DNA from: Orbicella franksi
Lineage: Eukaryota
Direction of reading: 5' to 3'
Assembly: GCA_964199315.1 (NCBI GenBank)
Contig: OZ116704.1
Location: forward strand, 29,326,001 to 29,390,000
Length of the DNA stretch: 64,000 nt
Shown: in pieces, positions 58,330-60,682 of the stretch
Layout: each line of letters opens with the position of its first letter
Position numbering within the stretch: position 1 is the stretch's first letter
Notes under the pieces: generated by a model
What the model was told of the DNA's origin: nothing
Seen by the model: only the letters and a program-made list of their open reading frames with translations
Database searches by the model: none
Made by a program: the position numbers and the translations under genes

Positions 58330-60682
58330 ATGTTTCCTTTCCTTTTTGTGCTTTATTGCCTTTGCCAGGCAACAGGAGGTCTGTCCCAGTCGCCTACAGA
58401 CAAAGTTGAGTCCTCGAATTCGGATCTGTTTGGCAAACTCATGGCACAATGCAACTGGAAATGTGTCGTTGTTGAGTTTGCGGACTTCGTACCAAAAATG
58501 AAGGTACTTATTAGCAACTACAGGATTGTGTCGCTACACCTTACGCTGAGGAAATACGTCGGTGACAGTTGCCTTAACCAAACGGAGTTTTTGAGGTCAT
58601 CAAGACTTGCCAAGGCTTGGATATGGTCCACAGTCAGCACTCGTGTGAAAAACGTATTTTACCTACCTGATAGCGATGACTCGTCAGGAATCTTGTTCAG
58701 CAAATCAGTCGAGGGACAAATAGAAGGTAACGTTGCATGCACCTTTAATCTTTCCACGGATCAACCATACTCGTCCTTAAATGATGTAATTGCAAAAGTT
58801 CTGATGGAAGAAGTTGAAGAATCAGACGAAGTCCGCGGGCAGTTTGGAGCAGCCTTGTGCTACAAGGAGAGAGAACTGACTAGTTTATATGCGTGTCTAA
58901 CTATTGATAAGAGCGCCAAAGACACAACTGGCACGCTACCACCAAGTAGAACCCTAGAATGGCCAGTTCGAGTTCAGCCGGGTTTTATTATCTTAATATT
59001 AGTTTTTTCTATACTGTTCTTCCCTGCGGTACTTTGCTTATTTTCTCCGACATATGTTAGTACTCAAAATCCAGCAGAGGATTTGATTGTTCTTGATGGA
59101 CCGAGTCATACAAGCATTCGAGGTTGGATAGCAAATACTGTGTCGATACTGTCTTTGAAGCTAGGTATTGGGCCCATAACTTTGACAGCTTGCCATCTGT
59201 AGTCTAGTTTCAGCATGCACCAAGTTAGCCAGAACTCTTTGAGAAAAACACAAAAAAATTCACCACATTTTCTTATGATCATTGCTTGTATCTGTAAATG
59301 CTGCTTAATCTCTTCCCCCAGTCCTAATGCGTCATGAAAATTTTTCTCCTCTTTAACATAATCACAAACAAAACATGGCTTTAGGAAGGACAAGCGGGTC
59401 AAAAATACCCTGCAAAAACCCCGTGTACACAACAACGTACTCAAAATTGACAGCACATAAATAGTTTTAAGTGTGAATTCCTTTGCATGTATATCAAGAT
59501 CTGGATATACCGATGAAAAATGTAAAACTAACAGTAAAATTAAAATCACAATCCAACTAACAATCAAAATGAGAAAAAACGTACCTGTTTTTTTCACTTG
59601 TACTTGTAGTGGTGATTTCGCTGATTTTATGTCTCGTTTTCTATCTTGTTTTAGTCTTCTACTCGTGTCCCATGACATCCATTTTTGATTTTTATGCCCA
59701 GTTATTTATCAAAATCAGTGAAACCAAATGCATGACGATTACACGTATTTTTTTGTTGTCGTTTTCCCTCATGTTTCCATGTGGGACTGCAGTGAGTCTC
59801 TTCAAGAGAAGGGTGATATTGTCAGCATCTGGTCGTCAGCGAAGATTTTGAATCTCGCGCTCGGAAATTGGCTGAGAGTCGGTTCTTTGTTCTAGAAACA
59901 ATAGCGCCTTTCAAGCTGCAAACAATAAAAAATGCCCATAAACGGTGTGCCATTATCCAAAAATTAAACACAAAGTCTGATATGTGCTGTTGATGTCAGC
60001 CTCTGTATTCGTCAAAGCCAGCACAATAATTCTGAGTACTGAAAATATCGCGTCTTTTACGCTAATTGTCCTCGGTATATCTTACTGCTCGCGTTGCTAT
60101 AATTCTTTTACCAGCAAATATGACGATCTCGCAGCAAAACTGTACAGCTTTTTAAAAAAAGGAGTGCAGGCGAACAATCAACTTGCCCTTTACCTTAAGC
60201 ATAACAAAAAGAAAGCGATTCCTAAAGACCTTTTTGATAATCTGTGCCAAGAAAATATGCCCCTCGGAGGAAACATCTGCAAATTGTTGTTCAGAATTTT
60301 TGTAATCTGTGCTTTTTTCTCATTGGTTTATAAAATTGTCACAGGAACACCAGGTGTTCCCGAAAGAATTCGAATAACGACCACGTTTTTGGTCGCTGTT
60401 AGCCCGATGATTGTAGACATCGTGGTGCTAAAGAAAAGCGATAAGATGGAAGAGCTAAAGCAGGAAGAAATAGATGAAAAGATACGGATTAAAGTGGATG
60501 AGTATATTGAAGCAACCCGCCCAAATCAACATGGGCTGCATGATGAAAGAGAAGGTGGGCGTTCAGCCGCGGATAGCCGTATCGACATAAGGAGCGGGAG
60601 AATAGAAACGCCAACAACAGCTTTGCCATCCGGCCACGATTCAAGTACCGCTCGAGGTGCTCAGTTCGTTACCTCAATTTAA
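58330..60682 (+). pseudogene. Signal-peptide, multi-pass membrane protein gene of unknown family, disrupted by an internal inversion, a +1 frameshift and a 174-bp stop-containing insert
   Basis: The ORF pieces 58330-59167 (+), 59168-59581 (-), 59582-59819 (+) and 59994-60682 (+) join into one frame of about 725 aa after flipping the inversion, removing one T from the T7 run at 59588-59594 and removing the insert. Confidence 0.7.

Follow-up and report, generated by a model that had tools for sequence, protein, structure and literature searches.

Why does the middle of a coral membrane-protein gene read on the opposite strand from its two ends? The question arises at positions 58330-60682 of the window (the whole 64,000-nt stretch of DNA analyzed here, which lies on contig C7 of G000, a stony-coral assembly of 497 Mb). 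A sequence-only reading had proposed a codon-exact 414-bp inversion, bounded by a pair of inverted 5-mers and most likely produced through microhomology in a dying gene with two other lesions, and it had kept an invertible switch and a misassembly as alternatives. Our results indicate with high probability that the gene at this locus, intact in relatives, carries two lesions: a derived germline micro-inversion of 411 bp within a coding exon, and a repeat insertion.

Pieces and breakpoints of the gene

The listing of open reading frames gives, on the plus strand, a frame of 290 aa that runs from ATG 58330 to a stop at 59202, the same truncated product that had been read from the letters. It also contains a 190-aa minus-strand frame over 59106-59678 and two further plus-strand frames, at 59609-59851 and 59984-60682. 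Taken together, these are in all likelihood the remains of one single-exon gene of about 722 aa that would have encoded a multi-pass membrane protein (Table 1), and the locus is best annotated as one broken gene and not as a 290-aa protein, an antisense 190-aa ORF and a 232-aa ORF. The 5′ part encodes a signal-peptide-like start, a Cys-rich ectodomain, a first transmembrane (TM) segment (aa ~211-244) and the start of a second; the 3′ part is the most conserved of the family (..SFTxKYxDL..).

Full-length relatives were collected by an exhaustive HMMER search with the N-terminal piece, followed by a word-based search with the best one. The intact relatives of 672-736 aa all match the window as plus, minus, plus and plus pieces in the right order. 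Among them is P0043, which is encoded by a close relative's contig (L032; 94-98% nucleotide identity to the window) and whose residues 275-412 bear out the earlier claim that the central part reads on the minus strand (Table 1). Residues 284-422 of P0001 match the same minus-strand piece (E 2e-45). Distant paralogues match the N- and C-terminal pieces on the plus strand; their match to the middle, PCxVC motif included, is weak and falls on the minus strand.

Table 1. Features of the locus and alignments of its pieces to L032 (nucleotide) and P0043 (protein)
Feature or aligned segment	Window position	Strand	Remarks
5′ part of single-exon coding sequence	58330..59171	+	ancestral aa 1-280 of the 722-aa frame
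Present-day reading frame	58330..59202	+	290 aa; ends 31 nt inside the inverted piece
AGGTA 5-mer	59163..59167		upstream of the true left breakpoint, 4-5 nt outside; chance match
Inverted middle piece	59172..59583	-	ancestral aa 281-417, including the conserved PCxVC motif of the family
TACCT 5-mer	59582..59586		straddles the true right breakpoint 59583|59584; chance match
Coding sequence, TM-rich	59584..59801	+	ancestral aa 418-490; contains the T7 run 59588-59594
Insertion, 183 nt	59802..59984	+	4 nt of unmatched filler (59802-59805) and the last 179 nt (3′ end) of a young dispersed repeat
3′ part of coding sequence	59985..60682	+	ancestral aa 491-722 and stop
L032 1395-2980	57607-59171	+	nucleotide alignment
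L032 2979-3393	59585..59171	reversed	98.3%, gapless
L032 3392-3610	59584-59802	+	nucleotide alignment
L032 3610-4579	59985-60954	+	nucleotide alignment
P0043 (716 aa) residues 1-279	58348-59184	+	94%
P0043 residues 275-412	59585..59172	-	95% identity, E 6e-75
P0043 residues 413-491	59585-59830	+	protein match
P0043 residues 485-716	59984-60679	+	96%

The uninverted contigs X9 and L032 set the true breakpoints at 59171|59172 and 59583|59584. The flipped piece consists of 411 nt (59173-59583) and one duplicated base, not of a codon-exact 414 bp: G 59172 is the inverted copy of C 59584, and the C of the right breakpoint is thus found at both ends. The ancestral left junction reads ..GGTATTGG|TACGTTTT.. 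and the ancestral right junction ..GTTATGGGC|CTGTTTTTTT..; the left and right junctions of the window read ..GGTATTGG|GCCCATAAC.. and ..AAAACGTA|CCTGTTTTTTT.., respectively. Flank and piece overlap by at most 2 nt at the inversion junctions (GG/CC, from the HSP overlap with L032), and a search of the window found no inverted repeats flanking the piece. The words AGGTA and TACCT do stand where the sequence-only reading placed them, but they are not the breakpoints. Each shuffled window is expected to contain 1.29 such pairs with the same spacing, and 74 of 100 shuffles had at least one. The 5-mers are at chance level, and microhomology between them was not the mechanism.

We restored the ancestral order from the window's own letters by joining 58330-59171, the reverse complement of 59173-59583, 59584-59801 and 59985-60682. 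Joined in this way, the pieces span 2169 nt and read through 722 codons free of internal stops; the junctions of the frame read ..SLKLGIGTFFLIL.., ..VKVMGLFFSLVLVVV.. and ..AVSLLLLMSASVF... Against P0043 the frame shows 95% identity and 0 gaps over 716 aa, and with the distant paralogue L003 one alignment pairs its aa 40-674 with aa 41-680. The flip of 59173-59583 reads ..KLGIGTFFLIL.. and ..VKVMGLFFSLVLVVV.., and the frame continues through the T7 run. Flipping 59168-59581, which had seemed to give seamless joints (..KLG-TFF.. and ..MGPIP-V..), omits two residues on the left and meets stops from codon 453 on, and 59173-59583 is preferred; keeping the extra base, whether on the left or on the right, also gives rise to stops. 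The T7 run had been suspected as a lesion. It is in frame with the true breakpoints and is also T7 in the intact L032, and the apparent frameshift results from the mis-set breakpoints. The proposal of a dying gene with two other lesions thus holds in part: the gene is broken and the 183-nt insertion is there, but the T7 run is no lesion.

Uninverted relatives and the repeat insertion

The piece lies uninverted, inside an intact frame of 684-716 aa, in organism C, in L032 and in the outgroup L031. Contig X9 of organism C (866 nt, single-copy depth) matches 58883-59171 (-), 59173-59583 (+) and 59584-59749 (-), which is the uninverted order, and the 21 listed organism C differences create no stop when applied to the frame, within the partial coverage of organism C. 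L031, a locus on a 497-kb contig about 80% identical to the window, is syntenic on both gene flanks, has the uninverted order and aligns gaplessly across both junctions of the re-ordered window sequence. Because organism C, L032, the outgroup L031 and the distant paralogues are all uninverted, the uninverted order is ancestral and the inversion is derived. The order that the sequence-only reading expected of paralogues is the one found in L003 and the other relatives.

The insertion is absent from X9 (joint 59801->59985), L032 and L031, and it carries a stop at 59849-59851. Because of this stop, the frame would stay closed if only the inversion were undone; with the insertion kept, stops occur from codon 507 on. 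The inserted sequence belongs to a repeat with at least 11 genomic copies at 98-99% identity, and read depth at the insertion is ~20x single-copy. The copies share a 3′ end at the position of 59984 and differ in their 5′ truncation (lengths of 0.19, 0.37, 0.5, 0.68, 1.1, 1.3, 1.6, 3.7 and >4 kb), in what appears to be the pattern of 5′-truncated retrotransposition, and the repeat is a recently active element. Comparison of the junction letters with relatives revealed no target-site duplication at the window's copy (with a 1-nt ambiguity). A long copy yielded no reverse-transcriptase ORF, 8 kb at one long copy contained no ORF of at least 150 aa with a Pfam match, and an Rfam search of the insertion found neither a hammerhead nor any other family.

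At least four copies of the repeat run for at least 4 kb at 99% identity (G000:C11:14288234-14292199 and three other places). The C11 stretch contains no ORF of at least 150 aa, and the only long ORF in 8 kb has no Pfam match. Tandem arrays occur at C9:13886671-13888184, C14:6916609-6917462, C14:6963388-6963966 and C8:7460698-7461268, and their units share 76-88% identity with the final ~180 nt of the repeat. The element's 3′ end is related to a satellite-like array.

Inverted samples and competing explanations

Logan contigs of four public runs (DNA and one RNA) were placed on 58000-61000; the read evidence consists of such assembled contigs, in which minor variants drop out. Two contigs follow the order of the window over 58203/58244-59835, a stretch that takes in both junctions: X4 (1592 nt), which belongs to organism A but to a different study and departs from the window at 16 positions, and X3 (1633 nt) of organism B. 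A 68-nt query centered on the inverted left junction supplied three sampled words. All three occur in organism A (4 samples, 3 studies), in organism B and in 3 coral metagenomes, the junction words being present in 9 runs of 5 studies, and this search of public runs found them in no organism C or D run. In contigs, which hide minor variants, every DNA sample shows a single orientation, at depths of 40.7, 65.6 and 52 that correspond to one copy. A search of the assembly's own genome with the inverted piece returned only the piece itself and weak paralogue matches, so that the assembly contains neither a second haplotype nor a close intact copy.

One RNA run is an exception. X16, a polyA run labelled organism A, contains the uninverted junction (59169->59585, with 48 nt on the short side) on a contig whose SNPs are organism-C-like. 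The sample may be a C-like coral under a wrong name, or organism A may still be segregating for the intact allele. The contig hints that the intact allele is transcribed, and DNA carry-over could also account for it.

These data bear on several competing explanations. For an assembler that flipped a 412-bp piece of a genome uninverted in reality, no support emerged, although the uninverted form does occur in X9 and X16. Against it, both junctions are spanned in the window's order by X3 and by X4, which has 16 SNPs of its own over 1592 nt, and junction-spanning words recur in independent studies. The assembly is thus correct at the inversion, and we give the misassembly that the sequence-only reading had allowed for almost no credence. 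The other alternative it had named, a programmed ON/OFF or truncation switch with the piece flipping back and forth within colonies, is just as improbable. Both orientations do exist in nature, the uninverted one with the full-length frame and the inverted one with a truncated frame. But the piece has no inverted repeats at its ends, its junctions bear a 1-nt duplication and an overlap of at most 2 nt, each DNA sample shows a single orientation, and in DNA runs orientation tracks the species label. In addition, the inverted allele carries the disabling insertion, so that returning the piece to its old orientation would leave the protein broken. Contigs drop minor variants, and an individual might still carry the other orientation at a low level. 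It is conceivable, if somewhat unlikely, that the inversion is a polymorphism segregating in one interbreeding coral species complex and not a fixed species difference. The uninverted junction in X16 would fit, as would one metagenome study in which X7, X8 and X10 have the inverted junction and X12 (63% of the 1-kb words) is not among the holders. On the other side, the inverted junction is held by 5/5 organism A DNA runs with the locus (4 samples) and by the organism B run, and by no run of organism C or D, and the organism-C-like SNPs of X16 suggest a mislabelled or cryptic-species sample.

The inversion might also be real and its 290-aa product kept, as a truncated or decoy form of a gene that is remodelled and not dead. 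The 5′ 870 nt are still an open frame with a promoter region, the N-terminal part has no nonsynonymous excess in the window's lineage (5 N to 3 S), and upstream lies a tandem duplicate that includes the promoter and ~350 nt from the start of the coding sequence. Yet numbers this low fall well short of demonstrating constraint, the duplicate is fragmentary too, and recently broken genes routinely retain open 5′ frames; we consider retention of the product improbable. We place slightly less trust still in a narrower version, in which the inverted form would be a lineage-specific truncation allele of a fast-evolving surface membrane protein restricted to invertebrates, maybe still segregating against the intact allele across the species complex, with a 290-aa product (ectodomain and one TM segment) that serves as a decoy or soluble form (the upstream 5′ duplicate perhaps doing so too).

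Origin of the lesions and the protein family

Returning to the derived germline micro-inversion, we propose that two breaks 411 bp apart within the exon were rejoined with the piece reversed, in the lineage of organisms A and B. Either end-joining or a replication template switch would have done the rejoining and left a duplicate of one base at each end, and the 5′-truncated end of the young dispersed repeat would have been inserted 218 bp further on. What results is a frame that stops after 290 aa, with a short tail behind the ectodomain and a single TM segment, and the remainder of the gene would be dead. The lack of a flanking inverted repeat in the window and the chance level of the 5-mer pair argue against a repeat-mediated mechanism, and the 1-nt duplication at both ends with an overlap of at most 2 nt points to end-joining in which one end was staggered or filled in by 1 nt; a replication template switch could leave a sequence indistinguishable from this one. 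The change of orientation with its breakpoints and polarity, the insertion, the open ancestral frame and the occurrence of the inverted form in several individuals are directly observed; we infer the repair mechanism and the order of the two events, and the probable loss of function is likewise deduced from the structure of the gene. The window's lineage has 14 nonsynonymous and 5 synonymous changes and the L032 lineage 13 and 6; these few changes do not indicate that constraint has relaxed further in the former. Because the two ratios are alike, the breakage is either recent or represented by too few sites to tell.

Micro-inversions of <5 kb, mostly <1 kb, were surveyed between Drosophila melanogaster and D. 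pseudoobscura, and 0/143 overlapped an exon of a host gene (PMC1779558); 'ultramicro' inversions have been described between human and chimpanzee (PMC3227671). Like these evolutionary micro-inversions, the coral inversion is a sub-kilobase segment that is reversed between related genomes, conserved inside, and fixed or near-fixed in its lineage. Unlike those of Drosophila, it lies wholly inside a coding exon, destroys the frame and survives only in a broken gene. The locus also resembles a unitary pseudogene of the sort that structural lesions and a transposon insertion create, with an orthologue intact in sister taxa, no close intact copy here and several independent lesions. Such pseudogenes usually arise through point mutations, frameshifts and deletions, whereas the first-listed lesion here is an intra-exon inversion. 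With bacterial phase variation and shufflons it shares a coding segment found in two orientations, with a full-length or a truncated product, but the host is an animal, inverted repeat sites are lacking, each individual appears to have one orientation and the second lesion bars reversal.

Inversions that arise from staggered breaks and end-joining, as described for Drosophila, leave short inverted duplications at their breakpoints. The coral breakpoints are similar in that they lack repeats and have C 59584 and G 59172, inverted, at both ends. They differ in that the duplication is a single base, which simple end-joining with a 1-nt fill-in explains equally well. The locus opens no new mechanism and would be an ordinary structural pseudogene, resolved unusually cleanly: with both breakpoints base-resolved and the ancestral allele in hand, it provides a textbook-style example of a clean intra-exon micro-inversion. 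The inversion can also be used as a lineage marker that separates organisms A and B from C and D, in a group where species limits are hard to draw.

The ancestral protein is predicted to open with a signal-peptide-like segment and a Cys-rich ectodomain of ~200 aa, followed by many hydrophobic helices. Four window pieces and two intact paralogues gave nothing above threshold in Pfam, a PDB profile search with a 16-member family alignment gave no match, and an ESM Atlas search by features gave no usable match. AlphaFold2 with the 16-sequence alignment returned a poor model (pLDDT 58.5, pTM 0.40), and the AFDB matches of this low-confidence model (TM about 0.3) are uncharacterized proteins of corals, molluscs, annelids, brachiopods and Trichoplax. 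We set aside a 'GPCR' assignment, which came from one automatically named AFDB match at TM about 0.3 to the pLDDT 58.5 model. The gene belongs to an uncharacterized invertebrate membrane-protein family, and this family evolves fast; dN/dS between L032 and L031 is 0.57.

In the same genome, the closest sequences are paralogues at 26-38% identity and one 5′ fragment, with no close intact copy. At least eight paralogues are clustered on C7 at 12.58-12.88 Mb (L003, L004, L006-L009, L012, L015, L019 and L020), some of them intact (706-723 aa) and several with shortened open frames of 358-467 aa, and more distant family members are found on C1, C2 and C4.

The surroundings of the gene contain a tandem partial duplicate, in which window 48122-50104 matches 56243-58679 at 87-95% identity. 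The upstream duplicate comprises the region in front of the gene and the opening ~350 nt of the coding sequence; in the outgroup L031 the duplicated region is present once. Window 57519-57606 (88 nt) is absent from L032, where 1392/1395 correspond to window 57518/57607. The upstream copy contains an internal ~158-nt repeat joined by ATAAGTT (49327-49333), which accounts for an odd 58232->58075 joint in X3, X4 and X9.
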